Below, one piece after another: positions 1,297 through 62,301 of a stretch of 64,000 nt of DNA. A program made the position numbers and the translations under genes. The DNA comes from Botryllus schlosseri (lineage: Eukaryota), in NCBI GenBank assembly GCA_051294905.1, contig CM119376.1, forward strand, positions 25,234,001 to 25,298,000, in the 5' to 3' direction. How positions within the stretch are numbered: the first letter of the stretch is position 1; every line of letters begins with the position of its first letter. The notes beneath the pieces were generated by a model that saw nothing but the letters and a program-made list of their open reading frames with translations, ran no database searches and was not told the DNA's origin.

Positions 1297-1431
1297 TGTA
1301 GTAGCGTGACTGACGGTCTGTCTAATATACGAGACGTGAGTCCTCAAGCAGCCATGTATTCAGTGACGACCAAGCACCGAAGCACCTGCGATGTCGTCAC
1401 ACCCTAGTGGCGCCATAGAGCTACCACTACA
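1297..1431 (-). repeat. 3' LTR (135 bp)
   Basis: Identical to 2923-3057. Abuts the polypurine tract at 1432-1446 (minus strand TCCCGAGAAGGGAGA). Confidence 0.97.
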
Positions 1432-1615
1432 TCTCCCTTCTCGGGACAAGCACAAATGCTTATAAGCAGCACAAACATATACAACGCAAGCACAGAATGA
1501 AGACAATAAACAATCCGAATTGAGGCAGTTAGCGGTACAAAGGTATGAAGCAATTGGCAGGCAAGAGGTGAATGAAGAACACAACATATTTACACACACT
1601 ACTCCTATAACAACA

Positions 1616-2869
1616 TCAGTACTCCTCGATGTATCTGCGAGGTGCGGTTCTGTTCCGATCCGACCGTCGGACTATCGCCGCCTCATGATGGTCCTCACGA
1701 TTGACACTAGTAGCGCTCGAACTGCTATCTCCTCCCTGATCGGGAAATTTGAAGAATTCAGCTGCCTCACTGGTGGTAATGTCGACGCCTTCTTGCGGGG
1801 CATTCTCCGTCTGGTATCTCCGCACCATTCGGCGATTTCTTCTGAAGGTGCCACGCCCAGTTCTGATAACCAAGGATCTGGGTTGAGTGTCAAGTTTTTC
1901 CACAACACCTTGCGATTTGCAGTCCGGAATCCAGACGCGATCTCCCACCTTGAACTCATCTCCAGGTACTACTCTGTGTCTTTTGTTGTAATCACGAGTA
2001 ACTCTGCGTCGGTAATCTGCTTCAGCTTTCTTCACGGCGGTTCGGTCGACAGACTTGGGCAGAAGATCGTCTGGATGACACGGTACTCTTGTTCTTAGTT
2101 TGCGGCCCATGCTCAATTCTGCCGGCGAGTAGCCGATAGCCAATGGCGTGTTGCGGTATGTGAGTAGCGCCAGATATTCATCGTCACATTTTCGCAGAAG
2201 GTTTTTGATGGTCTGAACGGCACGCTCAGCCTCCGAGTTCCCCTGTGGATATCTAGGTGAGGACATGATATGTTCAATTTTCCAGCTTTCGCAAAATGAC
2301 GCAAAGTCGCGGGAAGAGAACATAGGTGCTCCATCGGTGACCAAAGTCTCGCAGATGCCATGCCTACTGAAAATCTTCTTGAATTTCAGAATCGTCTCTG
2401 CTGCGTTCACTGTTTTGGAGACTACGCAAATCTCAATGTCCCTGGAGTAGTAGTCAACGGCTAGCAGGTACATGGAATTCTGGTATTGAAAGAAGTCGGC
2501 ACCAACACGTTTCAAGAATAGCCAAAACTTCCTTCGCATTCTGAAGCGATCATCACGAAGCTCAAAGCACGCATCAAATTTGTCAATGACTAGTTTGTAG
2601 TCATTTTTATCCTCAGCAGGAATGTCTTGATCATTTTCTCGTCGAGCAGGAAGCCACGTGAGATTCTTATAAATTGACTTTCCCTCCGGACCAATAAGAC
2701 TCAGGAGGTGTCCTACCTTGACGCAGTCATCCTTTTGTGATAATTCTGCAGCACAGAGATACGTTTCAAAGTCTTCCTTCCAATCAACCCACGCTTGAGG
2801 CGGGTTGTTTCCAGCCAGTGATAATGGCTTCGGGTGCAGTCCTTGCAAGGCAGTATATCCACTAGCCAT
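1616..2869 (-). CDS. 417-aa Gag(N-terminal)-integrase fusion protein of the LTR element (K02A2.6-like/Mag type)
   Basis: aa 1-116 resemble Mag Gag (PKPLSL..AWVDWKEDFETYL..GHLLSLIGPEG..IY). From about aa 119 an integrase core: GADFF (D125), YLLAVDYYSR, LVTDGAPMFSS (D179), SSPRYPQGNSEAERAVQTIK (E215, D35E spacing), ALLTYRNTP, SPAELSMGRKLRT, and C-terminal FKVGDRVW. No PR, RT, RNaseH or HHCC motif. Confidence 0.93.
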   Translation of the reverse strand: MASGYTALQGLHPKPLSLAGNNPPQAWVDWKEDFETYLCAAELSQKDDCVKVGHLLSLIGPEGKSIYKNLTWLPARRENDQDIPAEDKNDYKLVIDKFDACFELRDDRFRMRRKFWLFLKRVGADFFQYQNSMYLLAVDYYSRDIEICVVSKTVNAAETILKFKKIFSRHGICETLVTDGAPMFSSRDFASFCESWKIEHIMSSPRYPQGNSEAERAVQTIKNLLRKCDDEYLALLTYRNTPLAIGYSPAELSMGRKLRTRVPCHPDDLLPKSVDRTAVKKAEADYRRRVTRDYNKRHRVVPGDEFKVGDRVWIPDCKSQGVVEKLDTQPRSLVIRTGRGTFRRNRRMVRRYQTENAPQEGVDITTSEAAEFFKFPDQGGDSSSSATSVNREDHHEAAIVRRSDRNRTAPRRYIEEY

Positions 2870-2911
2870 AATTCTGAGTAGCTAAGTAATTGCTATCAGC
2901 TGCATTTACAA

Positions 2912-2922
2912 CGCTGCCACCA
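2912..2922 (-). other. Primer-binding site, probably for tRNA-Leu
   Basis: Minus-strand TGGTGGCAGCG directly after the LTR is complementary to a tRNA 3' end ...CGCTGCCACCA. The Leu assignment is from recall of tRNA-Leu 3' ends. Confidence 0.75.
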
Positions 2923-3057
2923 TGTAGTAGCGTGACTGACGGTCTGTCTAATATACGAGACGTGAGTCCTCAAGCAGCCATGTATTCAGTGACGACCAAG
3001 CACCGAAGCACCTGCGATGTCGTCACACCCTAGTGGCGCCATAGAGCTACCACTACA
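2923..3057 (-). repeat. 5' LTR (135 bp)
   Basis: Identical to 1297-1431. Followed on the minus strand by the PBS. Confidence 0.97.
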
Positions 3058-3479: not shown

Positions 3480-6400
3480 ATGTCGAAATCTGAGCAATCT
3501 TCGGCAGTCAAAACTACTAGGCCGACCTATAAACGTATGGGTCAACAGTTTGTGTCGGGTGGAGCCGCAGGTTTGTCGATTCTATAATACGGTAACTTGA
3601 ATTCGCGTACATATTTTATGCATATATATATTTGTTTTCAGGACTGGTGGAGATATGTTTGATGCATCCTCTCGATGTTGTCAAAACCAGGTATGGTCCC
3701 GCATTTCATTTCAATAGTGATACATTGAATTTTCTTCATCTATTCTCATGCTCCACTCGTGCTACTCAATCAACTCAACCATAATTTCCTGTTTGTGCTG
3801 TGTCTAATTTTATTTTCCAATAATGATAGCTTAGTGCCGCTATAATGATGGTAAAATGTAATATGCCTTAAATTGGTGAAGAAATACCCAATGTGAGATT
3901 GAAGCTCTGTTTCTGTGATGCTTTTTTATCATGAATGAGTATGTCATGATTTTATCTTCAGATTACATGTTCATTTGAGAACTTTGCAGCTCATTATTAA
4001 GATCACTATTGCTAGTTTGCTACTATTGGTAACCAATCATTATACATCATGATGGTATGAATACAATTATTAGTGTAAATTAGAATATTCAGAAGAGCAG
4101 TATAAAACTATATTTCCGACAGAATATGCATAATACTGGTGAATGATATTCTTGAAAGGAAAAAGATTTTATGTAATAATTTGTATATTATAATTCATCT
4201 TTATTGTTTCTGTAATTGAATGCATTCTCTCTCTCTACTATAAAGCATTGTACATTATATCAAACCATACTCTAGTCATTGAGATGAATCAGATCTTGCA
4301 TTATATATCTTGAACTCAATACTGTTGTCATTCGGCCGATTGCTTTGAGATCAGTCGAACTGACCTCGTGCTCCGGATGTTTTTCAATGACTTTTATTGG
4401 CTTATTTGTTTGCCAATGACAATCATAACTGGACAAATATTTACTCAGCATGAATTTACACATTTTCAACTTCAATGTTTGTATGCCCTCTGCAGTCTGC
4501 ATCAGTTGCAGTGTTGATGTTGTATTGAGCAAATGCTTTGCTAATTATTTAGGCTTCAATTCAAACTTCAGTATTGGTTACTCCATGTTTTATTGGTGGT
4601 TCGCCAGTATGTACCTAATGGTGCGTTTTGCATATTCTGTATGAAAATGAGACAAATTAACATTTGCTCAAGAGGATTTTTGTGAGGAATTACTTGAAAT
4701 CACAATGTGATACCAGCACAGGCCTTCTTATACCAATATTATCGATAGCAACAGCTGGCCAGTGAATGCTACCCAATCTTAGCCCTAAAGTTCCTACAAC
4801 TTTCATGACCATGACTGGTTCTTTTGATATAAATTTTGTTTATTTACTCAGTTGGGCTAGTGCCACAATTAATAAACCATGCGATTTATGGCATGATAAC
4901 AAAAAATTATTATGCTACGCTAGTAAATTCCGAATTTGTCACAGGTTTCAACTTCAAGGTGGAGCAAATGATCCAACCAGATATACTTCTGTGGCTCATT
5001 GCTTTCGTACCATGTATCGAACTGAAGGGTGAGACGTATTAAATTAAATCTCCGTGCAATTTTGTGATTATGTACGCTACTCAAGATACATTGAAGCTGT
5101 CTTAATTCAACCCTTTTGACGCAGGTTCCTATCATTTTATAAAGGAATTCTGCCTCCGATACTTGCTGAAACACCAAAACGCGCAGTAAAGGTCAGCATA
5201 TTCTCATTTCCTATTCAGCACTTTACATTCTCTAATCGATATGGTGTAACTCAGGAATGAGGTATTCCATTGAAACGTGTTAGATCTCGCCAACCCGTTG
5301 CTGTTATGCACAAGTCGTGGCTTTGTTGGTGCACAATGCCGCAAATGAGGGGACCATTAATCTGTTTTCAGTGAATTTGTATGTAGCAGTGGTTTTCAGG
5401 GTCAAAAGTACTTGTATTGAACCAATATACTTGAATAAAGATCATTTTGGAAACCTCTGAATCAAAATGCTTGATTTCATTCAAAAAACTTTAATAAACT
5501 TAAATCTGATGTAGCCTATATTATTGTCTCCACGTAGGTGTGCAACTGTGCATTGATCAGTATCCGTTGGAAAAAATAACATTCGCATCACTAGCACAGA
5601 ACATTGTGGCTGTCAAATGGTTATCGTTGGTGTTAGTTGTCAGAAGCTATTAACAATTAATTCAGACACTCAAACGTATCGTCACTCCTGTTGAATCTAT
5701 TTTAGTTGAGATATGTATCCACTTATTTGCAACTTCCAATTAGAGAGGTTTTCTTCTTCATCGAAATCAATAGTTGTACTTGAGTGGATTATCTACAACA
5801 CTTCCTCTGCACCTATTAGAGTACAGTTCTGCCGGGGACATGGTTCTACTTATTATTGACTGTGCTTTGATCAGCTCTGCTATGTTTCACATATACAATT
5901 GAGCGGAATGAAGAATTTGCATCAAATTTATGTATGTTTACCCCATTTTATGTTTCAGTTCTTCTTCTTTGAAAGATATCGGGAGCTGCTGAGTTTCGGA
6001 CAGCCATCGACGCCGTTGGTACGTTCTGGGTTTTCGCCATTTAACCCTATTGCATTCGCCGTTTCGTAACCTTGATATTTGTTTGGATACATATTTGATT
6101 TTTTTGTCAATAGGGAGTTTTACAACAGACATGTGACTTGAGCATGTGGTGGATCAAATCTCGCTCGTTATCATTGAACATGGCACTACTGGTGAATATC
6201 ACTATTATAGAACAATGTCATGCCGTTTGTCCTGTAACATTGTAGTGCGAGAGCCTGGAAATAATTGTGAAACCCGGCCTAGTACTAAAAGACGTATATC
6301 TAGCTGGATTCCATAGTGAGACGATTCCTAGTGATGCCATTCACTCTGTCTGTATGTAACCAATTGAAGACACCTCATGATTACAAAGGAGTCGAAACGA

Positions 6401-9400
6401 GTAGAAAGGAGTCAAACAGCTATCTTGGCCTTCAGATAACTATAAGATATTGCATACGCACTGAATGAAGTAACAGAAGAAAACATAAAGTGGACGCGCC
6501 ATACAAATCAAGTCATTCAAGTGCATTGAAACCAGTATGCCGGATCGTAGTGCAGTAATCTGTAGCGTAGGCTAGTATTTTTACACTGTTTTGTTTTGGA
6601 AATACGGATTAGGCCACTTTGAACTTTCATGCTCCGCGTCTGAATCACTACTAGCTACTTGTTTGCATTGTTCGCTATTCTGTACTGCGTTTATGCTTTT
6701 TCGTGACTTGTATGTATGTAATAAAGTTCATTTTTCTATTTGCTCAAGTTGGATTTTTTCGAACCCTAATCGTCCTTAGGTGGCGCAAGAGCACCACGCA
6801 ACAATCGAGTCACGATGGTGCGAATCAAATTTAGGATGTCGCTTATCCTAGTAGCGATAGCATGCTATCCGGTGTTTATAATCGGCAACGTGGTCACGAG
6901 TGGTGTGAACGCATGATGCAGCGCACAATGAGATGTTGGAATGCAAATCATTTTCGCCAAATACGATGGCAATTCGTGGTAAAACAGCCATTGTCGGGTG
7001 GCAAGCAACATAATTTGCGCGTACGCGGCCATTCAGTTCACGGCTATGGTTCGCATGACCAACGCATACGCGCCGACCCTACTAATCTGCAAGACAACAT
7101 AACTGCTGATTCTATCTCAAATATTATATCATCAACCGGTATCACGCTGTTGCGTTTCGGCCGAACTATACGAAGACACACTCGAAGGCGGCGAAGCCTC
7201 GCATTTCAAATTGGTAGTTAGCCACTGTAGATATAGACACTTGTAAGGGAACTAATACTGAACCGCCAGTATCACAACTATTTGCTGCGTTTCGCGGCGG
7301 CGTGGATACCGCTTCACTGAATTGCCAGGCCGCGTCTCATCGACCGTCTTTCGTCGCTTTCCAGGTCTACGCGGCAGCCGGTATGGGGTGCGGCCTGACA
7401 GAGGGCTTCGTCATCAATCCATTCGAACGGGTGAAAGTTCAGCTGCAGTCGGAAAGAAACGTCAAATTGGCGGAGGTATGGTCACGTGACCTTTTACCAA
7501 TGAATTTGGCATTAGAAATGTAGTAACAATAATTATTATGAAAGCAACGTAATAATACTGTATTGATGAATTGGAAATGAATGTTTCACTTAATGTGAGC
7601 GTGGGTTCTGATACACGACACTTGGCGAATTATTATAAATGTACCGACTATAATTATTAAGCGATGCGTTACTACTGTATTAATACATACGGAAATGAAT
7701 GTTTCACTGAATATAAGCTAGAATTGTGATGTGATAACTAACTATTATTAAAGCGGTGCAATAATACTGTATTGATTAATTCGAGAATCAATATTCTAAT
7801 TTCCATTTCTGAAAATGCTACAAGAGAACTGTATAGTAGAGCTCTTCAAAAATGACTTTTTTTCACAAATCGTACTGGCTACTTGATAAAATTGTTAGGT
7901 TACCTCATTTAAGCATACACACAAAATTTGGTTCAATTCCAGCCAGTAACCGCTTTGCTACAGGAGAAGAAAGTTTCTATTTATTATATAAAAATGAATA
8001 ATAACAAATTTGAAAATTTTCTGTTCACCCCATGAAAATGTTAGGCTGTCTATAGAAACGATCCTCACCAAATTTGTATCAATTCCAACCAGTGGAAGCG
8101 GAGTTATTACCGTTGAAAAATTTTGATTTGAATAAAATAGTATTTACGGTGAGCACAACTATAATAAATAAACAAAGAATCGGTCACCGTAAATACTATT
8201 TTATTCAAATCCAAATTTTTTAGACGCTCCGCTTTCATTGGTTGGAATTGAACCAAATTTGGTGAGCATCGTTTCTATAGACAGCCTAACACTTTCATGG
8301 GGTAAACAGAAAATTTTCAAATTTTTTATTATTTATTTTCATATAAAAAATAGAAACTTTCTTCTCCTGTAGCAAAGCGGTTACTGGCTGGAATCGAACC
8401 AAATGTTGTGTGTAGGCTTAAATTAGGTAATCTAACAATTTTATCAAGTAGCCAGTACGATTTGAGAAAAAAAGTCATTTTTGAAGAGCCCTACTGTATA
8501 GTGCGAAACGAGTCAAGCTTTGTGTGCAGACATTTGCTATTCCCATGCTTATGTGAATGAACTCTGTTTTGCTATGAACTGAACTTGAATTTTGTCGTGT
8601 GTCTTTCTAGTGCGGAATTAAATACGTTTTCCCAAGTTTTGGCGACTTCAGTAAGTCTAATTCTAATCTAAGAAAATTTACATTTGTCCAAACTGCCGCT
8701 AAGGGCCGATTTCAATATGGGGAATTCACTGGTAACATCGACGCGCCCTATGAGCCTGTTACGCAATTTGTGCGGCGTGCGAATATTTCCGATTTACGTC
8801 CCGTTTCCGAATCGGAAGCATAGTGAGATGTATCGCGGATCGTGCCGCCGTACTGAGAATAGCCTGTATCAATTTACCGGGAGCGTAACAAGCCCCCTTC
8901 CCCGCTTGGCTTAGCGTGAATAGACCTCGTCTCTAGTCGTTCGGATATTGCGAAAAGACGCCCCTCAGTAAAATATTGATGCGGTTTTACAAAGGTGCGC
9001 CTCTTTTGACGGTTTTGACTTTCATATTTCGGCTTTGTTATGTGTGCGATGACCTAAAAATATCGCGCGAGAAATTGCGTTGCGCAAATTGCCAGATGTG
9101 GTCAAATTAGTCAACGTTGGTGGTAGAGTAGAATTGGAAGTAAAGTTGCAAATTTCTACTCGAGTATAAGTAGAAGCAGCGATATCCGAATGACTAAAAA
9201 GTCTGGATTTTTGGGCCCTAGTTTTGCTTAAGTAACTGAAAACAATCGAGTAGAAGTGGAGGTAGTGGAGTAAGTGTTGCGAGTAGACAAAAATACTTGA
9301 GGACTGCGTTAAAGTAGAAATAGCTATTTCCGAGTAAGTACGCATAATAAAGTACGTCTCTGAAGCTTAGTTTTGACTATAAGACTGAAAATTGTCGAGT

Positions 9401-12400
9401 AGAAGTGTAAGTAATCTAAAAGGCAGAAGTGGCGATTTCCGTGTAAGTGAAAAGTGAGTATTTTCGGCCTAGTTTTGCATAAAAAAAAAAGTGAAAACTG
9501 TCAAGCAAAAGTGAAAGTAGTCCAGAATCATAACCAACTGAGTAAGCAGCTTGACTAGATGACATCTACTGAGTACTTCAAAAAAGTAGAAGTAGCATTT
9601 TCGAGGAATTAAAAAAGGTACGTGGTTTAGGGCTATAGTTTTGCCTAAAAAGGTGAAATCTGTCAAGTAGAAGTGGAAGAAGTCTAAAATCATAACCAAT
9701 TGAGCAAGTAGTGCGAGTAAACGAAACATACTTGAGTACTCCAGATAAGTAGAAGTACTCCGTTAATAACCATATCTTTGAATTGCTAACCGACGTAAGT
9801 TCGCTCTGTCGAATGTTGAAATCATACTTCCGAAAACTTCTGTTTCAGCAAGAGTCCACTTTTTCGAAAGCGAGAAAAATCATCAAAAGCGAGGGCCTGG
9901 GCATGAAGGGCATCAACCGCGGTCTGACGGCCACGCTGGGGCGGCACGGAGTTTGGAACATGGTTTATTTCGGGTTCTACCACTCCATTAAGAAGTACAT
10001 CCCGCAAACAGAGGTGAGTCAAATTGATTCGGCTAATGTGTTTATTTGTTTTGCGTCGAGGTTTTGCTATCCTATTCGTTTTAATCGAATCAAGGTGTTA
10101 CCACGCATAAACGGTGGTCGCCTGATTTCCTGCTCAGCATGGCAACGGCGTGTCGCGCATTAATAACACTTTGTTATTTGAACAGCTTCTTTGAGGTACA
10201 GAACTTCAATATACAATTGAATAGTATATTCATATTAAAATGAACCCGAATATTTTCGGCTGACACTCGTCAGGGGTAATCGTCAGCAACTAGTAGAGAA
10301 TTCGAAAGAACAGCGTATATCAACAATCGTAACACAAAATATGACGTCACCAGCACGAAATGTCGAATACGAGTCAGCTACCAGTGATGTAATTTGATGT
10401 TATCCGGTGTGCGTGCCGTGAACTCGAAGTTCGTAATCGCGCTTTGTAAGATGCGCGGCTTCCGACCCCGTCGTTGAGGTGTGGCTTGAGGTTATGATAA
10501 AATACTGTAACTGCGCAAAATACGGATGGTTCGTAGATATTTGCATTGTTAAAACTGATGGTAGGTGTTGAACCGCGTGACGCTATCATGTAGGCTACGT
10601 GTGTTCACTTCCCGACGGGATCCGTATCGAAATACTTGTACTTATTTGGAGCAATCAAGTAGGAATTGCACAGCGTCTTATGACGCCACAACGGGTCCTA
10701 CGCGTACGCTGTTATCTTCTGAACGCATTCTAGATAACACTATGGTTAACCCGAGACAGATACCTTGGCATTGAGCCCGCACGCTGGAATTCCAATCGCA
10801 AACATTGTAACAGGCGTATTGGTATATTGTGAGTGACAGAGCTGATGATGGATACTATTGGTTTTCCTTGGAAATGTCACCCAGCTTACGTCTTGCCCGC
10901 TGCTGTAAGCTTTGATTTACTTCCCTTGTTCCGTGTTTGGTTCTGTGGCACTCTAGCATGTCGTTGCGGTTCGCGAACAGATGTTGTTTTCATATTTTCC
11001 TTCGCAAGCTTTCGGAAACACTTGTATCGCCGGGGCGAAAGTCTTTTAGCGACGTGTGTAGATACCGCCACGCTGCGCGGACTTTGAATGGTGCCCGCTC
11101 TCGTGGGAAGTCGTTTTGCCAATCACAGATTTCATTTCCTTCTTAGTGCGAGTATTCTGCGTCGCCCAGACCCTTTTGTAGCGCCCATGATAGTAGTATT
11201 CGTATGCCTGCGGTTGCCCTACATTTGAGCATGCGACACTTGAACTTTATTATATTATGACTTTGACTTGAATATTTGACTTTATAACCTCAAAACTAAC
11301 CCTAACCCAGAAATCATCACGTACCCAAACTCTAACTCAAACCATACATGAAATCTAATCCTGACCCAACCCTAACTTAAACCCAACTGCTCAAGTGTCG
11401 CACATGCTATTCGTATGCCCGTATGTCTCGTCTATTTTCTACGGACCATGCGTACATTTGTATCGGTAATCGCACCGGTGTTGCGGCTATACACCCGATG
11501 TATCTACCTTGGTAATTTGTCCAATACAACTTAGTTAGTTTCGTGCAAATGTCCAAGGCACTTACAAGTGTCCGTGCTCGATATTGTTGAGGCCCAACTA
11601 TTGTTGCAGCTGAAATTCTAAAACGTACGGATGTGCAATTGTGCATGTTGTATATAGCATAATTCTTCCTATCATGTTGCGGAGTTGTTGCTTTTAGCTG
11701 CCTTCGCCGTTGAATCACGCTAAGCTATTATTCCGACTTGCAAAGCGAAGGCCATTTCAGAAGACTTGTCAAATCTGCGATATTTCGATTCTGCCCAGCA
11801 GTAATGTTTGCGAAATCCTGTCATTAGCTCCCAACTACACCATATATAAGACTGCACAAGTCGGGCTTGGGCTACCGTGTAACATTCACAACACTGCCTC
11901 GTCGCCATGTGGCATTAACAAGGGCTGGGTATGAGTACTGAAATTATACACTCCGTCATACTAAGAGTTAAAATTTATCAGCGAGAATCACAGTTTCGAT
12001 ACTAATTTTCAGTGTGGCAGATTTGAAACCTCAATCGGTCGTATCGCTTCGTACGTAACGCGTATAGTACAAATCTACGCACTTTCATGGAAATAACGTG
12101 TCTGCGAATTCATGATCGACGCGCGGCATTGTCACTAAGTGCAATGAAATAGGCATATTCGTGAAATACCAAATTATCTTTTATGTGATGTAGAACCGGC
12201 ATGATATTCTTTGCGGTGGCATAAAAGTTACGTATTTGAACTTAATACTTCTTTCATACTTTTATGGCGTTATAATTAGTGATGCTCGACTGGGCCCGAA
12301 GCCCAGCCCATGCAGCCCTATATAGTATTAACGAGTATACCTTAATACGCTGGACGTCGCATTGCTTCATGAAGTGAGTCGACTTCGTGCCACAGACCTC

Positions 12401-13836
12401 CAGTCGTGAGTCACGTCGGCAAAATCTTGTCTTTTGTCCGATCCCGTTAATCACGTCTCGTTGCCACAAGTTACACACCTTGTTGGAAGTATTGACGCCG
12501 GCGGCATGATTTCCTGCGCCCCTAAAACTCTCAGTATCTTACGAGCGACGCGTTGATGACAGAGAGCAATAATGTTGGTACTCTTTTCAGTCGAGAGGCA
12601 AGGAATTCGCTTTCAAGTTATTGAGCGGATTCACAGCTGGCACGCTCGCGTCCACAATTAACATTCCTTACGACGTGGCGAAAAGTCGGATTCAGGGGCC
12701 CCAGCCGGTTCCCGGGCAGATCAAGTATTACTACGCCCACCGCACCATGCTGCTGATTTACAAGGAGGAGGGGTGGGTTTGGATGGCGTCTCGTGCGTCA
12801 CGTGGTTTATGCTGCTAATGCTGATATTTTTCTGTGCAGATTCCGCGCTCTTTTCAAAGGATTAACCCCGAAAGTAATGAGGCTTGGACCGAGTATGTAT
12901 TGTATATATTTACACTTACCTTGTAACTAAGCTTGATATAGACTCGACTATTTGAGCAAATATAATACACGTGATCCGGCATTTTTCTTGAAATGTACGA
13001 AAGAAAATCAAGAAAGTAAATGGCAAATGAATTAGCCGTGTTTTAAATTTGACTGGTATACGAACAGCCCGATCTTGGAGACGGGTTCTCGTGTGGCAGG
13101 GGCTGGCGACCTATTAGACAATCGGGCTAGACATGGCCAATGGGCCATGGGCTAGAAAAAGATATCTAAGGCCGTGGGACGCGCAAAAACTTCTAGTAGC
13201 TGCAGGTCTCACCACGTTAGAAATCGCGCTAAGAGACTTGTAAAGCAGTAGGGAATGGCGCGAAGCAAAAATATCCAGGCAATTGAATTAATTTTGTTAC
13301 AAGTATTCGTGCGCAAAGTCAACATTTGCGTGTTCTCTGGTCCTTTTATTAGATCACCCGAGCTTAACTCAAACTTCCCGTACTGGGCTAAGTGACTAGG
13401 CTATTTCGCGGACCGCACATACTATTGAAAGTTGGTATTTATCCGCGGTACGCAGGTTGCGCAGCCCTGTCGTGTAGCATTCCGCGCGTTGCAGCTCACG
13501 GCCCGACGATTTCTCGCGCCGAGATCGAAGGTCAGACAAAAAAGTGAAATCAGTACTTGCGAAAATTTGATCCGTTCCGATCCATCAGGTTTCTGTTGAT
13601 CGCGGTACGCAGTATAAAGCTTGCTTGAAAATGCAGCGCGCGTCGGAAGGCGAAGAATCCGCGTTCGCATTTCAATCCTGCGAATCGTTCGCACGTTTCC
13701 GACTATGATATCGTTTTTTCTGTTGCTCACTCGCCTCGTCGCCAACATTATACATTGCCATTCATTTTCAGGCGGGGCCATTATGCTGGTTGTGTACGAT
13801 TATTTATCGAGCTATCTCGCTGCAAGATTTCCGTGA
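3480..13836 (+). CDS. SLC25A21: Mitochondrial 2-oxodicarboxylate (oxoadipate) carrier, 308 aa, 10 coding exons
   Basis: join(3480..3570,3642..3690,4945..5028,5125..5191,5959..6018,7365..7475,9849..10013,12591..12772,12840..12892,13772..13836) = 927 nt, all GT-AG and in frame. Three carrier signatures PLDVVK, PFERVK, PYDVAK. ODC-diagnostic GLVEICLMHPLDVVKTR, YKGILPPILAETPKRAVK, GLTATLGRHG, KSRIQGPQPVPG. Confidence 0.96.
7531..7790. repeat. Degenerate tandem repeat, about three units of 90-120 bp, in SLC25A21 intron 6
   Basis: GGAAATGAATGTTTCACT at 7573 and 7691. TAATACTGTATTGAT-like motif at about 7552, 7670 and 7762. Confidence 0.7.
7834..8496. mobile_element. Foldback MITE (near-perfect palindrome, about 315-bp arms, about 31-bp loop), TA-flanked, Tc1/mariner-like
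   Basis: Left (C/T)AGTAGAGCTCTTCAAAAATGAC pairs with right GTCATTTTTGAAGAGCCCTACTG. The arms pair inward to ACGGTGA(8146-8152)/TCACCGT(8184-8190). TA on both sides. Confidence 0.9.
9093..9778. mobile_element. hAT-like non-autonomous element rich in AGTAGAAGT repeats (older copy of the 41710 family)
   Basis: Left CAGATGTGGTCA and right ...AGTAGAAGTACTCCGTTAATAACCATATCT resemble the ends of 41710-43382. Degenerate 8-bp TSD CAAATTGC/TGAATTGC. Confidence 0.7.
11197..11419. mobile_element. Small element with subterminal inverted repeats and degenerate (CCTAAC)n core, Helentron/DINE-like candidate
   Basis: Direct repeat TATTCGTATGCC at 11197 and 11408. Inverted repeat AGCATGCGACACTTGA (11228) / TCAAGTGTCGCACATGCT (11391). 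CTAACCCTAACCC-like units at 11295-11387. Confidence 0.5.
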
Positions 13837-14153
13837 ATTGCAACATCTGCATCCGTGTTTGGACCCGAACCTATTTGCCGGCCGATTGTCTCATGAAGCC
13901 AACGCCACTGGAAGACCGGTGGAATCGTGGAATTACATTGCTTTTATATGTTTCGCGGTACTCGATTTTACTGAATCGTATTTCTGTTTCGCATATCTTC
14001 ATTTCAAATTCGATTGTTGTATATTCTGTCGCTGTGCGATTCAAGTGATCAGCAATTGGGGAAGAATATTTTTCTCACTCATCCTCTCACGGAATCGCCT
14101 TTCCAGGATTTCGTAAGATATTTGAGAAGCGAATCGGTTCCGAACGAAATTAC

Positions 14154-14159
14154 AATAAA
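14154..14159 (+). terminator. Candidate polyadenylation signal of SLC25A21
   Basis: First AATAAA noticed downstream of the stop codon, about 320 nt away. Not verified by transcript data. Confidence 0.45.
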
Positions 14160-16768
14160 TTTCTAATACTCGTTCTTATTCTGAAATTTTACCTGGTGAA
14201 TCTTTATGGGTACCGTGTGGCTGACTCTTTCAAATATTATTGTCATTCACCTATTACATCGCACCATGTCACAACCGATATCTCACAATTAGCCATTCAA
14301 TTGCCATCCGTGCTGAAACGGATGCAATAGATTTGCAATTGTATATTTTCCAAAGTGATCGCAAACTTTTTTGCCAAAAGGCGCGCGAGACAAAACCACT
14401 AAAACCATGAGTTTTGCCTCTGAATCTGCTTTGCATACTGCGTAATGTGTCTTCCGTCTGTGTATTTCGTATTTGAACCATGACACTGCAATCACTGCGT
14501 GTTCTTTTATTTCATCGTCGTATCAATGCAAACTTCAGTGCTTCGTTCATAGGTTTTATGGCTGTGACTCACGGAATTCTCCTTTCAGATTCCCTGTCAT
14601 GTCGAATGCATGCTGCTGCAATTATGTAATTTTCTTCTCGCGTGTATACGTTATGTGGTTGGTCGCGACCAAAACATGCCCTTTTAATCATAGTACTTTA
14701 ATCAAATCAATCCGCTTATGCTTTTGGTGCAATATACTGTTCTTGATATGCTTCGTCTCGATATATTTGTAATTCGTCTTGCTTACTAGTGCGTATGTTT
14801 TCGCCTGGGTCAGATCAGCCGACAAATAAAGACATACGTCAGCTTCTTTCGTGTGTTTGTCTTATCGAACTGTCCTCACAGCTGAATTGCTGGTAGGATC
14901 CCGATCGCTAAGAATAGGCTAAGGTTAGCTACGCTGGATATCCCTCTGAGTTCATTTTCAGCCAGCGAAATACACGGGGAAGTGGGGAACCCGCCCTACC
15001 GCGGTATTATTACAAACGTGTTCATATGCGTAGGCAGTTATAGGCACCAACTAGATATTTTACGCTCACGATGTCAGTCGAATACTCGAACTATTGCCAT
15101 AAATCAAGGAAGGATTCGAACACCTGCGCACATTCGAAAAACAAGTGAACCATTCTAAAACAAAACGATGTCTCGTAATAGGTACAGGATCGCCCTAGTT
15201 AACAATTCTTGAGGATCATATCTGCTTTTAGACTTCGACGTGAAATGAAATGTAGTTGATTAATGATAGTGCCCACTTTTTGTCTCATTTGCTCATTGAC
15301 CGGGCATAAATATATAGAATATAACGACTTCGCTTTTATCACTGTTTGTAGTAGAGTTATACGCATGAACATCGCAGATGTATAGGCTTACGCCATTTTG
15401 CAAAAGATACCATATCTGTAGAAATTTCAATTGCCGCTGAATATTTGTGCCTCAGTCAGTTTTACATACTCTATAGCTCTGCGTAACATGTTGCGTTCTG
15501 TCTGAACTTCGACAGATGGACATATTCTATATTTAATATGCAACTCATTCAATTTCCCCGAAAAATGTTTCATCAGGGTCCTGACTTTTCTATACAATAC
15601 GTATAAATTATGCTGCGGTACATCTTTAATATTTTAGCCCATTGATTGAAATCACACCGAAAAATAAGAAATTTCATTTATTGTAAAAACATGATGGAAT
15701 CGAATCAATACAGTTACGAATCGGACATCAGTAAGTCAGCGAGATAGAGAGAGGGAAAGAGAAATTCCAATTTGCACATTAACCCGGTCTGTGGTGTCTT
15801 ATTGTCATAATGACCAAGGTATAGAAGCAGTCAGTATATGAAAAGTTGTTCGCAGTCTCTCTATGTATTTGTAAAAATTCGCTAAAGACAGGACCAACAT
15901 GTATCTGTTATTTATCGCGATACAAAATATATGATGAGACTTAATTTATAATTCGGTTATCTATTTCAGCAAATAATAACGCAGTTCGTAGAAATAGCTA
16001 GTCCATAGCGAATTCTGGGTACACTTCAAACATACATACAAACATGAAAGTGCACGGTATTGAAAGCGTAGTCTTATATATGCATAATGCATATATACCA
16101 TGTGATTAACACTTTATTCTTAACAACTAGGAGTCGAGCGCCAAGGTAACGTTTTCCTTTATTGTGAAATAGCCTATAGTACTGCTCTACGAGCGGAATA
16201 GTCGTTATTTCAATCGGTTGATATAGCAACTCTTCGTTAAAAAGCTCTAAAACCAAATTCCTCCGAATGTATGGATATTAATTTTATTTAGGTACAGTTA
16301 TGAAGATGGGAACCTCTTTATCACAAAGGAAAAAGAGATGATGTATACTGGCTCATCTTATTTAAATGCAAAGTTGTGAACGTGTGGTATCTGATTGTCT
16401 GCAAATCGCAAGAATGGCTTCTAAAATGAAAGATTTGGATCTTAAAATGCAGTGAAATAATGGCGACTTACGAAACGTCGGGGAAATATAAGAAATATTC
16501 AAAAGAGGCAGCACTAATATAACTATATTTATTTTCGAAAAATGTGACGAAGCACAAGAGTTTATCAGCATTTCTGAGATGCTACGTACGAAACCAGCTC
16601 TGTCATCGCTTTCAGTGCTGCAGTCAGTCCATCATTACATGATCAGTATCTGAACCATGAATTATCGCGCGTGCGTCGTTGACAGGTGTTCTGTCCAAGC
16701 TTCATCGCCAATAACCTAGCCGCTCAGCAGTCATTCGGCCGCAGCTTTGCGTATCCTTGTTCAGTTGC

Positions 16769-19700
16769 TCATGATGCATTAACAGCGGTCATGGCCGAAA
16801 CCGTGGGGTGGGGATGTCCTGGGGATTTCGTCATGCTGACGCACTTGCTTTCGTTGCCTGTAAAAGGAATTGAAGCTACGCATTAACAGTAAGTACATGC
16901 GAAGAGGCCTTTTTAGTGAGTTGCCATCGGAGGTTACAATAGCTACACGATCCGAACACCACTAAATCTTGACCAGCATGCCTTAACCAGCAGGGACGGG
17001 ATATAAATCAACCAAATGACAATTAGAATTAGGTATCTTTTTGGTCTCTACAGGTTCCATAATTTCGCAGTCATCATACTGCGATTCACGTCAGTATCCA
17101 TTTATGCATTTATGCAAACGGACAATGGACATTGGATAATGGACATTGCCCGTACACCACGGTCGATCAAGGTTATACTTTGTAACTGGGCAAAAGTAAT
17201 GCCAAGAGAGAGAGAGAATTATTTTATTCGTCAACCATGAAATATAGTATAGGCATTGTCCACAAACATTCACGTCCAATAATACGCATTTTTTATATTT
17301 TCCTAACTATATTCTACACGGTATAGACCGGGAGACCCGATATGACTGAAGTCTTCTAGGCCGGAGTCACCCAACATATATTTGGCAGTATTAATAACAA
17401 TATGAATCTCCTAGCAATGTTAACGTCTAGGTAAATCAGTCACTTGCTCTGACGAAACCTATACTTATGAAGGCTGATAGCAGGTGTCAGGCTCAAGGCC
17501 CTCCAGAAAAATGTGACCACTGGTCCAGTTAATGCGGTCAGCGGGAGAACAAGTGCTGTGGGAATGAGTTACACAGAATGCCAGCGTGAACTTCATATGC
17601 GTTTCGCAACTCTTGCTCGATATTTTGTTATTATTATCCAAAGATTTACATCATACATTGACAATGGACATTGGACAGTCTGACATGGGAACATATTATA
17701 ATACTAAGCATAAACCATTATATCTCTCGCGCTTGCTTGTCAGTATTAATCAAGTTAGGAACACAGATCACGAGAACGGGGTCAATTGTGACGTATAATT
17801 AGTACAGTGGCTCACTTACCGTGTGATAGACTTCCTTGATATTTTGGATAAATTGACATCTGCTGCGGAGCTAGGCTTTGCGAAGGCATTGATATTGTCT
17901 GAATCGGTGGGTACATCTGGCTCTGGTGTTGGTGAGAAGGTGCAAGAGGCATTGTTAAATGATTGACGGTATTCGGAGAGCTGGAAAAGCTTCGTCCACT
18001 CGTCACAGAGTCATGACGCCAACCATTCATCGATGCGGAATATTGATGCGACATGTAAGAGTGACCGTTTGGATAGGCCGTTGATTGCGGAATGCTTGAC
18101 GGCGGAGGTGAAGCGTAAGTCGTATCGGTATTCTCACTGTAGTTCTGTTGTTGATGATCGTGATTCTAAAAAGATGACATATTTATTTCGTTTATGAACG
18201 AAATCTAATCGAATACAAGCTGAGGCGTGTAGGTTATCTAGAGAGCCTATACTTATTAAATCTTGCCAGGGATATCTAGAACTCTTAGATATCCCTGAAA
18301 TCCTGCGAATAATCACACCTGGTAAAATTGGCAACCGCCCAACACTTGGCAATGGAGTCGACCGTATCGATACTGTAAGTAATCCATATATGCATGGCCA
18401 TAAAATATGGGTAGAGAATACTTACGTTCGGGGACATGGACGGATGATTTTTGTCACCATTCGTAGGAGAAGTCCCGTTTATATTGACGGACGTGGCTTG
18501 TGCTGGTGGCGTTACTCCATACGCTGGGACTTTAGCCCATTCTTCTATTTTGGTGGACATATTGTTTGATATATCATGAGGTCCGGTTACGTCGTTTAGA
18601 TTCCCGTAGTGTCCATCTATGGATTGCAGTGTACCAGTGGAGCTGGGAACTGAAATGGAAATGATACGTTTTAATAAAGTATATAGACTAAATATACCAA
18701 CACAAGTTATGTGGGCATTTCTCTCTCGGAGTAACGGAAAATAGCTCGAGCAGCCAGACGATTAGTTCATCCTGTCGACTGCATATTTGAACCATTCATC
18801 AGAGTGCCTCCTTATTACACCAAAGTGAGGTACTGAAGGAGAGGTCGTACAACTGAATGCATATATCAATCGAGCGAAACCCAAAATCCTCATCCGAAGT
18901 AACCCCGCGTAATTAGCTTGTTTGCCGAGCCTCACCGTCTCGGAATATTCAATCACGTTTCACTTACTCTCTGTGGCATTACCTTCTCAAACTATGCTAG
19001 CCTTGCCAGGGCGAGATATAGCGAAGCACGGAAAATAACACAAAATGAAGTACGAATTCTGTCAAGTAGGTCAAACTAGACTTTGGGAAAGGGGCTGGGT
19101 CCAATAACGCTTTTTCCTAAGTGACCTTATTCAAACAAAATCATTTACTATTCCTGACTGTTTATTCAGCCCCAAAGATCTTCTGCTAATTGGGCAAGAA
19201 ACAGCAGGTGAAAGCAAGGCTCACTGTATTGATTCTGCATGAGCATTCAATGAAGGTTATTTAAGCTGAGACAACTTCGAAAAGAGGGCCATTACGTCAC
19301 CGACTATACTTGACTTGATTTTTCACACATACCATCTGATTACGTTTATATCAATACTATTGTAGTATCGATCCTCTTAGTCCAACTATACCAAAGAACC
19401 ACTGCGATCCGCCAACTCGGTGTCTTAAAAAATGCCTAGAAGTGGGCCGTGCCTCAAATCGGCAGATGTGGAATTGTAATAAAGAATATCGGCCTGGTGT
19501 AAATGAACATTGTGGTTGGAAAACTCCACGAATACCACAAACTACAACAAGTGTGAGACCCAGGCCACTATATACTGGAAATGTGAAAGAATATTTGCGC
19601 TGGGAATTAACAGGTCGTCGCAAAGTACTTCGTTAAATGAACGTTTCTTCTGTTTGTCAATCCTTCTATTTTTAGGAGTGTGTGAAATCGTCATATCAAC

Positions 19701-22700
19701 ACAACTCAAGAAACTTAGTAACCTTCATTAGAGGAACGGCGTAGGCCTTGCACGCTATCCTCGCGCCATTTTGTTCATTTGACATGTCTTAAATTGTAGA
19801 AGTAGGAAGGCCCACTCATATTGCAGTATGGATTCTATCCCACGAAGAAGTGGGAAAGCGCGTTGGAGGTGGAATGAAAAATAAATTTTAACGGGGAAAT
19901 CCTGTTCGACGTAGATGCATGCATGCAAAAGCGTAACGACTAGATCTCTGAATGGAAATGCGTAACCGTATCCAGTGAAGTTAAGTTCTGACAAATTGAA
20001 CCATGAACGGATTAGGTTAAATGAACGCCAAAGTATATCCACGTCCAGCTGTCAGCGCCGACGGTTTCTTACCGATATTCCGCGCTTCGTAACTTTGAAA
20101 ACGTATAGACCCACCGATTTTCTATGGTCAATTGGTTAAGCAGTGTAAAAATTGTCACGGTTGTACCCTTCACTGGACCGAGGTTGTACTACGAACAGGA
20201 GCCTCGTGTTTTGTCCGTTCGGCAAATTCTTCGTTATGCGCATTCAACGTTGCACGGTGAACCACGACTTGTCGGTGCGAACGCTAACATTATACGGATT
20301 TCCGAATGCAACTAACACGTGCATGACGATTTACGCTCATTCACGGTAAACGCATGGTGATGTATGATGACTTGACAGGGCCCGGTTTCTCATGCTCACA
20401 CGTGAACAATATACTGATCAACGGAACATATATCTTTACCTGAAATGTGCGGCTGATCGAACCTCGGGAAACCAAGGATCTCGTTGACCGAGTGGCAATA
20501 CATCGGGTACGGAACCGCTGGGTGCCTGAATGAAGCAGGTCCCGGTACGGACGGAGGCAGTGGATGTGGCTTTGAACCTGGCTGCAGCATGTAGGGAGTA
20601 TACATCGCGGACGCAGCATTGCTGTACACGCCTTGATGATGGACTCCTGGCGGAGGCGACACGTCTTTTATCATATTTTCTTGGCATGATGCCGGATAAT
20701 TTGGGTTCAGTGGATTGTTCGGATGCAGCACATTTCCGATCTTGTTCCGCAGGATTCTGCTGATGGAACTGACGGACGGCACGTTGTACTTGTCGCATAT
20801 GCAATCCGATAACAGCCTGTCTCTAATCTCCCAAGCGAAAATCCCGGGATCGCGGACTTTATAATCCTTGATTGCGTTCACCACCGACGGGGTGGTGACG
20901 CGTGGCTTGCTACCCCCAATGGCGCCCGGTAAGATGGAGCCTGTCTCGTTGTAACGGGCGAGGATTTTGCTGACACAGCCGTGCGAGACGCGAAGTTGTC
21001 GGCTGATGTCGCAAGGTCTGATGCCGAGTTGAGCGAGTTCCACGATACGCAACCGAATGGCGTTTGGAAGCGGGCGTCCGTTCACGAAAACCCCGCCGAG
21101 TTGATTCACTTCACCGAAGGTTTGCTCTGTTCTGCAAACTGTTGTTGCCGAAGAGAAGTCCATGAAAAAGAATGGATATATGTTAATTTAGAAGTAATGA
21201 AATGGATTGTGCATTCAGTATTATTGTTGCCATAACATGAAGTTAAAATAAAGGGCTGGTAATCGTATATTTTGTATCTTTCTACGTGGGTGACTACACA
21301 CGCGACCGCGGTGTGGTGTCAATATACGCGATGAGTAATGTACATATAAGTAAGCCCCCAGTTATACACCCACCAGTGCCTCTTTATCCAGAAAATATCC
21401 GTAAAATGGCGGGCTTCACGTAATAAATATTGTTTCTGATTGTGGTAGCAATTAAGGCGGAATTGAAGCATAATTTGATGTCGTACATCCGAATATTGAC
21501 GGCAAATATACACTATAGCTTGTACTCGTCTAAAGAGCACCGAATTCCCAACTACAAATATAAGATAGCAGGTACCAACACCTCTCCATATCTAATAGAT
21601 AATGTACGAACAACTTATGCGGATTAACCTTGATGCTGGACATGTAATCTTGCTAAGGATGACATAGCTCTTGACGTCATAACACGCGATATATGATCAG
21701 CCGCTGCAGAGCTCCCGAACGCATCAAAATCAGTCAAATGATGACCGGCCGTAGGCGGTATTCCCACACACGAAAGCATATTCATACAAATATATTACTA
21801 TAAGTTTTACTGGTACAGTATACTGCCAGAATTATCCACATTGGATTATCCTCAATTTCGAAATAGTATCTTCGCCATCTGACTTGCAGCCTCTACCTAG
21901 TTCGCATAGTTTGGCCTGAAACCTTTGAATCCGAACCTCGCCATTATTGACAAGCGGTGAACCAGAGTCAATCAAGATGTTTGTTTGTTCGTTATATTTT
22001 TGTGGACACTACGGCTTATTGTTACCCACTTTTTCAATTTTGTCTCACAGTCGTTTCAATCGTCTCTCAATTGATCGCTTTCCTATACGATTGCCCTATT
22101 TGATATAGACAATGCGGAAAATAGGTGAGATTTCTGAAAGCCATATCGCCACTATTCTTTGGAGTTATCAGATCATAGATTAGTTACTAATATTGTTTTA
22201 TTAAACTGTATAGGTTACATTTTATAGATGTATATTTTTGATCTGCCTGTTCAGAATTTCGGTACGCACCTAACGTACAATCGATATCGCGGCCCTTTCA
22301 AACGGTAACTGCGGTTAGCTGCATTGGTCTTGGAATTTTCTTTGCATCCGTACAATCCAAATTCAAACCAATGAGGAAGCGATCCATCTGCGATTGCTTG
22401 AACGCAAATTCATTGCTGCCAGTTATACTTCTATTGATGTTGCAAAATTGGAATTTTACATAGGTGGTTGATTCGAATTGATCGGGTGCTATTGGTAGTT
22501 TGCATTCACAAAAACAGCGCAATAAGAATAAATTAAATTTCGCAGAGTAAACCCTTTAAATACCCTTAAATATCCGTCGCTTGTATCATTGTAAGTTGTT
22601 GCTAATTGTGCATGTTCGGGGATTACACCCCAAGTGATTGTGTACGCCTTCCCTGCTGGCAGCAGTTATATCAGTAGAAAGCGGTATACGAGTAATGCTA

Positions 22701-24771
22701 AATTATTCACGCACACCATAATCCATGATAGATTACCCCTTCCCTCGCAACCGTTCCAGCTATTTCGACCCCTCCAAACATATTCCGAAAGTCGAAATAT
22801 TACATGGCTAGGCACTGCTCGGACATTTGGACAATGAGAGTCCTATGTAAACAAGAAACATTCGTATTGTATCGACATACTTTCTTTAAAAGTTTCTGTA
22901 TAGTACTCACTCGCGTGACTAAGTAATACTGATATAACGAATGGTCATTTTCAACCCCCCTTGACTATTTGTCTTTAAATTTCATCCCCCTAATCTCCGA
23001 TATTGTTTTTAATTCAGATGCTCCTCTACTCCGTCATGATATTATCATTACATGGTACTATCATGTCGCGAAAATTTCTTCTTTTCGATTGAGATCGATG
23101 TGGGAAATTCAGAGAGCTTTAGTGATCAATTAAATTGAATAAAAGAGACGGACTCCTTACTTCATAATCGGTAACAAATATTATCAGTTTTAGAAAGTTC
23201 ACACATTTGCAAACATGGAAACAAATACATTAGAGGGTTTACGATGCGATAATAATATATTCAGACTAATATGAGCTTGTATTGGATTAAATACGAGAAA
23301 CCGATAGTAATGCTCCTACCCAATTCTGAAATATCTTAAGTTAGACCCCAAATTGTTTGGAGGTAAATTCTTTATTATATTTAAAACATCGTCTTCTATA
23401 TCATTATACTTGGAGCATGTATCTTTATCATATTTATACTCTCAGCTCTGGATGCGTTATGAATTTGGCTGAAATATATGACCACAGAGAAGTTATTTAG
23501 CAATGAAAATTAGTATTAATCCTCAGCGGCCCACCGGGTGGTATATTTGTGGACTTTTAGTTTGTAATCCAACTGTAGACGATATATAGACTACTTGAAA
23601 ATTATTTATTCAGAATTTTGATGACTTCTCTGACTGATTATGTTTATGTATTGATAAGACGCAGTTACTAGTCAGCCTAACATGTGTGCTTACCATTGAC
23701 ACCCTTGGATTCTTCACGACGCTTACGTAATGTATTTCAAGGAGTTGGACAGCGATGTACCTGTGCGTCACGTCAATGCGATTTAGCGGATAGCTTATAC
23801 TGAACGATGATATCGTCGATTTTCCAAACAAACAATTCTAAAGGTTTTGTCGCTGGGTTTGGACTATGAAAACAATTTGTATTATCGAATAGCGCGATTT
23901 CTTAAACCCCCGTGCGATACAAAGGTGTTTATTCAACAAGCTCTTGTACCGCCCGTGCGATGTACCAGCAAAATACTGTCAATCGTTCTTTCTTGTACAG
24001 ATTACTGATAGGTTTATCACGATAATGCTCGATTCAAAGTTCGATACAAGGTCTAAAATCAGATGGTACAGTATTAGAAAACTCCTACCCGCGAGTAATA
24101 ATATTTGAAACAAAATGGCGCTCAAGGTTATGCGGATAGATTCTATATTAAATTATAGATCATGCTCAGAATGTTTCGCACTATCACCCTAACCATGACA
24201 TTTTTCTTTTCATATTTTCAATCTGCGCCTTTTCATCGTGATATTGGAAGTGGCACAGACTACAGACACACATTCATTGTTAGATATTTTCTTATACTCA
24301 TTTGTCGCTATTTGTTTGTCTGGGATTCGCACGACTTTATGAAGAGTGGTCTCTAAAAATCTTATTTGTCAGCGCAATTCACCAGTTTTTCTAAATTGTT
24401 CCCACTACTTAATTACGGCAAATACTGTAATTGTAATCCAAGCAGAAATAGCCTTATTTACACCAGCAGCGCTCACGGTATTGTCATATTTGCTACCAAA
24501 TATTATGTACAATATTAATATTGAAACCTACCATATGCCAACTCTCCAGGAAAGTTAATAAAAATATTTCTGTAGGTTCAAAACGATCAAATTAACTTCA
24601 AATTCTAAGTACATACTTCCCATACTAACGTATAACAATCATTCACATTAGCATTCACAATAAATAGTACTCACTTGTTCCCGATGTCTGCATAATTGAA
24701 ACCATACCAGGTGGACCCGGATGAGGAGAACTGAATGTGACAGGCTGGCTCTGCGTTGGAGATTGAATCAT
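16769..24771 (-). CDS. Pax1/9: Paired-box transcription factor Pax1/9 (paired domain + octapeptide, no homeodomain), about 480 aa
   Basis: complement(join(16769..16857,17820..18165,18426..18649,20440..21126,24675..24771)); phases are consistent, 1443 nt. Paired domain [79 protein letters not shown] is Pax1/9 type; octapeptide HSVNEILG. The paired exon is secure, the three 3' exons are well supported by splice signals and frame, and exon 1 (24675-24771) is tentative. An alternative in-frame ATG lies at 21163. Confidence 0.93.
17320..17394 (+). repeat. 75-bp dispersed repeat (inverted copy at 33855-33928)
   Basis: Both copies share GAAGTCTTCTAGGCCGGAGTCA and flanking GGGAGACC..GATATG and TTTGGCAG.ATTAA. 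Confidence 0.8.
19418..19510 (+). repeat. Dispersed SINE/LINE-3'-end-like repeat, copy A
   Basis: Core CGGTGTCTT..AAA.GCCTAGAAGTGGGCCGTGC..CAA.TCGGCAG...TATCGGCCTGGTGTAAAT shared with copies at 40897, 41597 and 59065. Confidence 0.8.
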
Positions 24772-33928: not shown

Positions 33929-35788
33929 ACGTAGAATTTGAACGTGAATGTTTGTGGGCATTGCTTATACTATATTTCATGGTTGACGAATAAAAGAATT
34001 CTCTCTCTTTACTTCGTCTTTTGTGACTTGTAAAAAGTTTCCTCTTTTTCGGTTCGCAGAATGTGGTAACCATGGACTTCATCTAAAATTCTAAAATAAT
34101 TTTCACCAAATTAAAAATAAAAGCGTAATTTTATCTTCATTTCCCTAAATCTATATTACCGCGGTCAGATATTTAATGAGAGAATACGTTTTTAGTCCAC
34201 CCATAACGAAATCAGCCAACAAAGAAACATTTATGTGTGAGAACGAAAGATATCGTGCAGTGATTGAGTACTCGAGCGCTAATAAGATATGTATGGACTT
34301 TTGGCCACTTCCGTGTCAGTCGGATTACCATTCAAATCTACACGTGAGTATTACGAACCCAATAGGTAGAAATTATACATTTTATGTTTGTAGATATGTT
34401 GTCGGCATCGTGCTCCTGAAGGATGCTGTTTGTACTGCCGCCGGACAATGCAGGCTTGGCGATTTACGGTAATTTTTTTCACCAAATTTTGCCATCAGGT
34501 ATCCTTGATATAGTTTCTCAAGGCCATACGAGTGTATTGTTTGCTGAATAGTCACCTCAGCCTCTCGTCAAAAGGCACCGCTATTGACCGTAAGTAATTA
34601 ACCTGTATTTGTGTTACTAATGGACCGTCTCAAAACTAAATCATTTTTACCCTTTTCTGAATGACACCACTGTTGAATTTGAGTGTTATCCGTTTTGCAA
34701 TCTTCACCACAAAACTTTGTAGGCTTATATAGATTGATGACATTTATAAATAAAAGTGTAAGAAACACATCTCGATACTATCTGAAGAAGTTGTGAGAGA
34801 GCCAAATTGGGACACATAGGTACGGGATAAATCGGTGATTCCATCAGTCAGCAAGAGGATCAAGTTACGGATGACGAATTACGTACCCCACCTGCCCTAC
34901 CCATTCCTATTTGTTCTCGTAAGCAGGGAAAGTATCGCGTTTCGTTAGTCCAATAAGCAAAATGTTGTTTCACGACTTTTTTCACAAAATACCTCATTCT
35001 GGCCAGTCCCTCTCTTACGAATTTTGTCAGCTGCGTCCGGCTCCAAGAGATAGCGATGAGCAATAAATTTTTGTATCTTTCTCCCCGGATATTATCTGAG
35101 AGCGGTTCTACGCATTCTTTTCGCGAAAGCTATTAGGGATCTACCCAAATCTCAGCCATTGATTTCCGTCGACCCTCTTCGCATCTCACTGCCCCCTTAT
35201 TTGAAAACAATGAAGTCGCGCATTCCAGCGATGAGGGGTTCGACCTCCATATCGACTTTCCCTCTTGATTTATATATTTTTGCAGCAGTAAAAACCAAGA
35301 TATTTGCCCGTACAGCCGAGGTGTTCTTTACATCTCATCGAGGTTCCTAAGTCAACAGGCTGACTTGAAGAGGTCTTATTCGCGCGCGGTGCACGCTCCC
35401 TATACTTGACTATAGCTCCCACTTTTATTGATAGCAATTTTGCGGATTATATGGCTCTGGCGTCAAATAATGCGGTGAAACAACACAAGAGCAAACTCTA
35501 TATCCACAATTGAACACGCGCACGACAGAATGGTGCCTCACGTCCTACTCTCTACACAAGTCACAAGTGTCCTGATGACATATTATTTGTAATAAAAACG
35601 CATTGCATTCACAACGGCCTGCTTATATGCCATCGAATCGCATATTATCCTTGGCGATTCAACATGATTGCGTTCCGAAATGATACTGCTGTAAAAGCTT
35701 CATTTTCTTTTACTATTCATGCGACCGGTTGGTTTTATTGAGCGACTACTTCTGGTATCATTAATGCAATTGTCTCGAAATTCTAGAC

Positions 35789-62136: not shown

Positions 62137-62301
62137 TTACTTCACGCCCATTTTCTCCAGCACCCGGGAGCCCTTCTCCATGTATTCGTCGCGGCTCATC
62201 CAGAACGATTCCTTGTCCTTCATAATGTCGGCCAGCACCGCGCCTCCCAAGAACACCATGTGCTTTCTGCGCGGCGGGTCTTCGATACGAATTTTGAATT
62301 T
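62137..62301 (-). CDS. ACTR2: Actin-related protein 2 (Arp2/3 complex), last coding exon; upstream exons not found in the window
   Basis: After the acceptor TTTTCCGTACAG: [54 protein letters not shown], matching the Arp2 C-terminus. This frame is absent from the ORF track because it lacks an early ATG. Confidence 0.93.

Follow-up and report, generated by a model that had tools for sequence, protein, structure and literature searches.

The convergent Pax1/9 and SLC25A21 genes of a stolidobranch ascidian: gene models, surroundings and persistence of the pair

How a gene for a mitochondrial carrier comes to stay beside the gene for a developmental regulator is the question raised by a 64-kb stretch of contig CM119376.1 (positions 25,234,001 to 25,298,000 of the forward strand; hereafter the window, with ~40% G+C and no runs of N). 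In this window SLC25A21 and Pax1/9, a control gene of the gill slits, lie on opposite strands and converge tail-to-tail. The pairing of pax1/9 with slc25a21 is a textbook case of microsynteny, and enhancers are thought to hold it together. An earlier note on the window, made from the letters alone, had described the two genes as the core of the deuterostome pharyngeal gene cluster. It had also argued that their retention would be notable and perhaps unreported if the genome belonged to a tunicate, and that it would suggest regulatory constraint. We find that the retained pair is real but ordinary, being already published and widespread in ascidians and in bilaterians. It is very probably the ascidian copy of an ancient bilaterian pax1/9-slc25a21 pair, inherited unbroken here as in most of the ascidians sampled, with the carrier presumably retained as a bystander of Pax1/9.

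Gene models and identity of the two genes

The two genes and the spacer between them are as follows.

3480..13836, + strand: SLC25A21 ortholog, a mitochondrial 2-oxodicarboxylate carrier gene of 10 exons encoding 308 amino acids; exons 3480-3570, 3642-3690, 4945-5028, 5125-5191, 5959-6018, 7365-7475, 9849-10013, 12591-12772, 12840-12892 and 13772-13836
13837..16768, no strand: spacer between the two stop codons, 2,932 bp, from both gene models
16769..24771, - strand: Pax1/9 gene of 5 exons encoding 484 amino acids; exons 24771-24675, 21138-20440, 18649-18426, 18165-17820 and 16857-16769

The carrier gene spans 10.4 kb from its start ATG at 3480 to a stop codon at 13834-13836, and Pax1/9 reads toward it from an ATG at 24771 to a stop codon at 16771-16769; every intron of either gene is bounded by GT and AG. 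The two start codons are the ends of the interval in which the pair was first noticed, and the earlier estimate of about 2.9 kb between the stop codons agrees with the 2,932 bp found here. A spacer of 4.0 kb, which results if Pax1/9 is closed with the open frame ending at 17812, was ruled out by the additional exon at 16857-16769. The shorter gap is the correct one because stolidobranch Pax1/9 proteins reveal this last exon, which is short and encodes a C-terminus conserved in Styela clava Pax1/9 and in two stolidobranch Pax1/9 proteins.

The identity of Pax1/9 is straightforward. The frame of exon 2 contains a complete paired domain (Pfam PAX, PF00292, E=2.3e-65), followed downstream by the octapeptide HSVNEILG and by no homeodomain, and the best database matches are Pax-1/Pax-9 proteins. 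Exon 1 is 94% identical to a stolidobranch Pax1/9 protein. Over the whole protein the identity is at most 78%, to the nearer of two transcriptome-derived proteins, while the paired-domain exon is ~81% identical to that of S. clava, 80% to that of Halocynthia roretzi, and 71-75% to those of Ciona and Clavelina. In a Pax1/9 tree, built without other Pax subfamilies as an outgroup, the tunicate proteins form a clade (support 100/98). Inside it is a stolidobranch clade with Styela clava and Halocynthia roretzi (98/97), whose sister clade holds Ciona, Clavelina and several further contigs. The present protein branches just outside Styela and Halocynthia, with moderate support (92/79). Because its Pax1/9 falls among the stolidobranch ascidians, the genome is, by this placement, that of a stolidobranch tunicate, other than S. 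clava and H. roretzi. The earlier note had guessed a tunicate and had named the gene Pax1/9, correctly on both counts.

For the carrier, one diagnostic exon was searched against 1.84 billion representative proteins, and the full-length matches were then aligned locally to the spliced model. The best of these show 58-60% identity over the whole length, and those bearing a name are all mitochondrial 2-oxodicarboxylate carriers (from frogs, mammals, ticks and a beetle); the identity to frog SLC25A21 is 59.6% at full length. The model has three tandem mitochondrial-carrier repeats, with the signatures PLDVVKTR, PFERVKVQ and PYDVAKSR readable in its 308 residues, and three of its exons give Pfam Mito_carr matches that belong to the second and third repeats. 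In a tree of carriers, it lies within a 15-row clade of animal 2-oxodicarboxylate carriers (ODC; support 98/94). The sister of this clade contains a yeast (Hanseniaspora) carrier, while UCP1, the sole named paralog in the outgroup, and protist carriers lie outside. By homology, the carrier beside Pax1/9 is thus the SLC25A21 ortholog that the earlier note had taken it to be. Members of the SLC25A21 family transport 2-oxoadipate and 2-oxoglutarate, an activity that is predicted for the present gene.

The pair in other ascidians and in earlier work

Annotated Pax1/9 loci were checked in three ascidians covering three orders.

Styela clava, OZ123513.1: convergent Pax1/9 and carrier, gap between gene ends ~6.3 kb
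Ciona intestinalis, AP043577.1: convergent Pax1/9 and carrier, gap between gene ends ~0.6 kb
Clavelina lepadiformis, OX392444.1: convergent Pax1/9 and carrier, gap between gene ends ~2.9 kb

In all three, a mitochondrial-carrier gene is located directly downstream of Pax1/9 on the opposite strand, and each matches the present carrier exon by exon. Since both orthologs are convergent neighbors in three other ascidian genomes, their adjacency in the window is not due to chance. Four further contigs carry Pax1/9 with flanks of 10 kb, which are too short to reach a carrier given the long Pax introns; two are uninformative and two borderline.

The linkage also has a published record. In Ciona robusta, only Pax1/9 and an slc25a gene stay close, ~3 kb apart, and in Botrylloides leachii Pax1/9-slc25a21 is the only remaining pairing of the pharyngeal cluster (Blanchoud et al. 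2018, Sci Rep 8:5518, PMC5882950). The same study saw no clustering in Botryllus schlosseri and Molgula oculata, the assemblies of which were fragmented. Outside tunicates, the pairing is present in protostomes as well (Simakov et al. 2015, PMC4729200), and it is among the three microsyntenic blocks recognized for bilaterians (Lin et al. 2024, PMC11175523). The pair has therefore lost its novelty, because the linkage was documented for tunicates in 2018 and for bilaterians in 2015 and 2024. The suggestion that its retention is notable or unreported does not survive these reports and the occurrence of the same pair in Styela, Ciona and Clavelina.

Flanking genes and conserved non-coding elements

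The reading of the pair as the core of the pharyngeal cluster holds for the pax1/9-slc25a21 block itself, which is present in convergent orientation. It fails for the cluster as a whole within the window. Neither nkx2.1 nor nkx2.2 was found in the 39 kb upstream of Pax1/9, to the window end. Within the 64 kb no Nkx2, msx/cnga, FoxA or Mipol1 gene was seen, nor does a forkhead motif occur anywhere in the window, which on the mipol1/foxA side extends only 3.4 kb beyond the start of SLC25A21. In Ciona, FoxA is on the same chromosome as the pair. The place upstream of Pax1/9 is taken instead by two other genes.

53500-57041, + strand: BarH-like homeobox gene of four exons, between Arp2 and Pax1/9
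62140-62328, - strand: last exon of Arp2 (ACTR2), E=1e-26 to Arp2 residues 339-391; the gene runs past the window end

A single homeobox motif occurs in the window, at 56.5 kb, outside Pax1/9. The homeodomain of the BarH-like gene is split over three of the four exons, and exon 1 encodes an EH1-like motif, FSIDNIL. BARHL2 is the top match of each homeodomain exon (E=1e-7), compared with 1e-5 for Nkx2.5 and 2e-4 for Msx1. The assignment of this gene at 53.5-57 kb to msx/msxlx or Nkx2, which would have added a third member of the cluster, was rejected because BARHL2 is the best match. No BarH-like gene is found in the Ciona, Clavelina or Styela loci compared.

Arp2 is shared more widely. A 394-residue gene of the 'Actin' family, which corresponds to Arp2, lies just upstream of Pax1/9 and in the same orientation in both Ciona intestinalis and Clavelina lepadiformis. 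Because Arp2 lies upstream of Pax1/9 in Ciona, in Clavelina and in the present genome, the gene orders place Arp2, Pax1/9 and SLC25A21 in a three-gene block common to three ascidian orders. We found no literature report of an Arp2-Pax1/9-SLC25A21 block. Between Arp2 and Pax1/9, the present genome has the BarH-like gene and a 28.7-kb stretch with no recognizable genes. On the other side of the block, Ciona has a trypsin-like gene beyond the carrier. In the window, a small long terminal repeat (LTR) retroelement occupies 1297-3057, directly upstream of the SLC25A21 start; its open frame (1616-2869, - strand) encodes 417 amino acids with an integrase core domain (Pfam rve).

Conserved non-coding elements were sought with blastn between the window and the S. 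clava locus (L007), which on the carrier side reaches only as far as the last three exons and so includes the last two SLC25A21 introns. The comparison gave eight collinear matches outside coding sequence, each of them single-copy, four upstream of Pax1/9 and four in its introns.

38467-38574, no strand: upstream of Pax1/9, the strongest element; 82% identity over 108 bp, ungapped, to L007 749-856; E=3e-25
37913-37955, no strand: upstream of Pax1/9, collinear, single copy
34828-34896, no strand: upstream of Pax1/9, collinear, single copy
29645-29742, no strand: upstream of Pax1/9; 74% identity over 101 aligned columns to L007 7099-7197; E=2e-9; single copy
23865-23936, 21623-21675, 20110-20164 and 18782-18894, no strand: introns 1 and 2 of Pax1/9; E from 1e-6 to 4e-5

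The strongest element is located 13.7 kb from the Pax1/9 ATG, and its counterpart lies 9.2 kb upstream of Pax1/9 in S. clava. It is a single-copy sequence in which as many as 19 consecutive bases are identical; the open reading frames overlapping it have no Pfam match, and it has no Rfam match. No Rfam family reached its threshold anywhere in the window. The four intronic elements keep the same order in both species. All four upstream elements fall between Pax1/9 and the BarH-like gene, within the 28.7 kb that lack recognizable genes, and they are candidate enhancers of either of these two genes.

Persistence of the pair

Regulatory constraint appears to be the likeliest cause of the retention, and a plausible one. 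SLC25A21 would lie, as in vertebrates, within the DNA that controls Pax1/9, a developmental regulator, and would be retained there as a bystander gene; in addition, the very short convergent spacer would offer few places for a harmless break. Regulatory elements of pax1/9 have been placed in the introns of slc25a21 (cited by Simakov et al. 2015, PMC4729200). Expression of Pax9 in the mouse drops when Slc25a21 carries a selection cassette, but not when the carrier is cleanly removed (Maguire et al. 2014, PMC3958370). The linkage of Arp2 to Pax1/9 in Ciona, Clavelina and the present genome fits the regulatory block that would be expected around Pax1/9.

Several observations weigh against this account. 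Relative to S. clava, neither the 2.9-kb spacer nor the last two SLC25A21 introns contain a conserved non-coding element. Nothing credible was detected in any SLC25A21 intron when the window was compared with Ciona, Clavelina and a Clavelina-like contig, where only exons match; one 38-bp match of 7980-8017 to a Ciona intron is not collinear (E=0.007) and was taken as chance. Because all detectable elements lie upstream of or within Pax1/9, the bystander mechanism lacks direct support in tunicates. In addition, SLC25A21 is complete on contig ctg14079l of the Clavelina-like assembly ERZ21736675 and is followed by 18.4 kb in which there is a FANCL-like exon and a hAT transposase and no Pax gene. 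The Clavelina-like Pax1/9 of that sample is on another large contig, ctg14226l, and the two contigs need not come from one organism. The pair may be broken there, in which case the constraint on the linkage would not be absolute. The regulatory constraint proposed in the earlier note is accordingly a reasonable extension from vertebrates, to which the spacer and the last two SLC25A21 introns of the window add no direct evidence.

The same observations are what would be expected if the pair persisted passively. In that case, the distance between the convergent 3' ends (0.6-6 kb) would present a tiny target for a harmless break, in a slowly rearranging segment that includes Arp2. The absence of conserved non-coding sequence from the spacer and from the SLC25A21 introns tested is consistent with this, as are a spacer length that varies freely between 0.6 and 6.3 kb among species, the apparent break in one Clavelina-like assembly, and the lack of clustering that Blanchoud et al. 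reported for the fragmented assemblies of Botryllus schlosseri and Molgula oculata (PMC5882950). However, the pair has survived across bilaterians and in three orders of ascidians despite extensive scrambling of the rest of their gene order, and vertebrate data tie Slc25a21 functionally to the regulation of Pax9 (PMC4729200, PMC3958370). Passive persistence is possible, though we consider it rather unlikely.

That the carrier is another SLC25 paralog, next to Pax1/9 by coincidence, was tested and is highly improbable: its one point in favor is the inconsistent name 'slc25a29' for the Ciona carrier in two places of the results text of PMC5882950, and against it stand the full-length identity to proteins named SLC25A21, the presence of the diagnostic stretch SRIQGPQPVPGQIKY, the placement in the ODC clade, with UCP1 and other carriers outside it, and the 71-89% identity between the Ciona neighbor and the present carrier in the best-conserved exons, compared exon by exon. 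Because the Ciona neighbor of Pax1/9 matches the present SLC25A21 in this manner, slc25a21 was evidently meant in that text.

With the carrier identified, retention of SLC25A21 as a bystander of Pax1/9 is the explanation that we favor. One more ascidian with the pair is an added data point that leaves the general picture unchanged. The modest additions made here are the exact gene models, a block that reaches Arp2 in three ascidian orders, and a short list of candidate Pax1/9 enhancers. A bolder proposal, which we put forward tentatively and regard as rather unlikely to hold in full, is that Arp2-Pax1/9-SLC25A21 constitutes an ascidian-wide regulatory block, in which the elements shared with S. 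clava, above all 38467-38574, would act as gill-slit enhancers and further elements in SLC25A21 introns 1-7 would hold the carrier in place. If so, tunicates would offer a compact locus in which to test the bystander-gene model that underlies the deuterostome pharyngeal cluster.

Three known arrangements can be compared with the present one. The deuterostome pharyngeal cluster, nkx2.1-nkx2.2-pax1/9-slc25a21-mipol1-foxA (PMC4729200, PMC11175523), shares with the window its central pax1/9-slc25a21 block. It differs in having Nkx2 genes where the window has the BarH-like gene and Arp2 upstream of Pax1/9, and the cluster as such is not present in the window. The vertebrate PAX9-SLC25A21 block (PMC3958370) has the same convergent geometry, with Pax9 located 3' of Slc25a21. 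However, the vertebrate SLC25A21 gene extends over hundreds of kilobases and contains conserved non-coding elements, whereas the present gene is 10.4 kb long and no conserved intronic element was detected in it. The tunicate pair of Blanchoud et al. 2018 consists of the same two genes close together. In contrast to the fragmented Botryllus schlosseri and Molgula oculata assemblies of that study, which showed no clustering, the pair in the present genome is intact.

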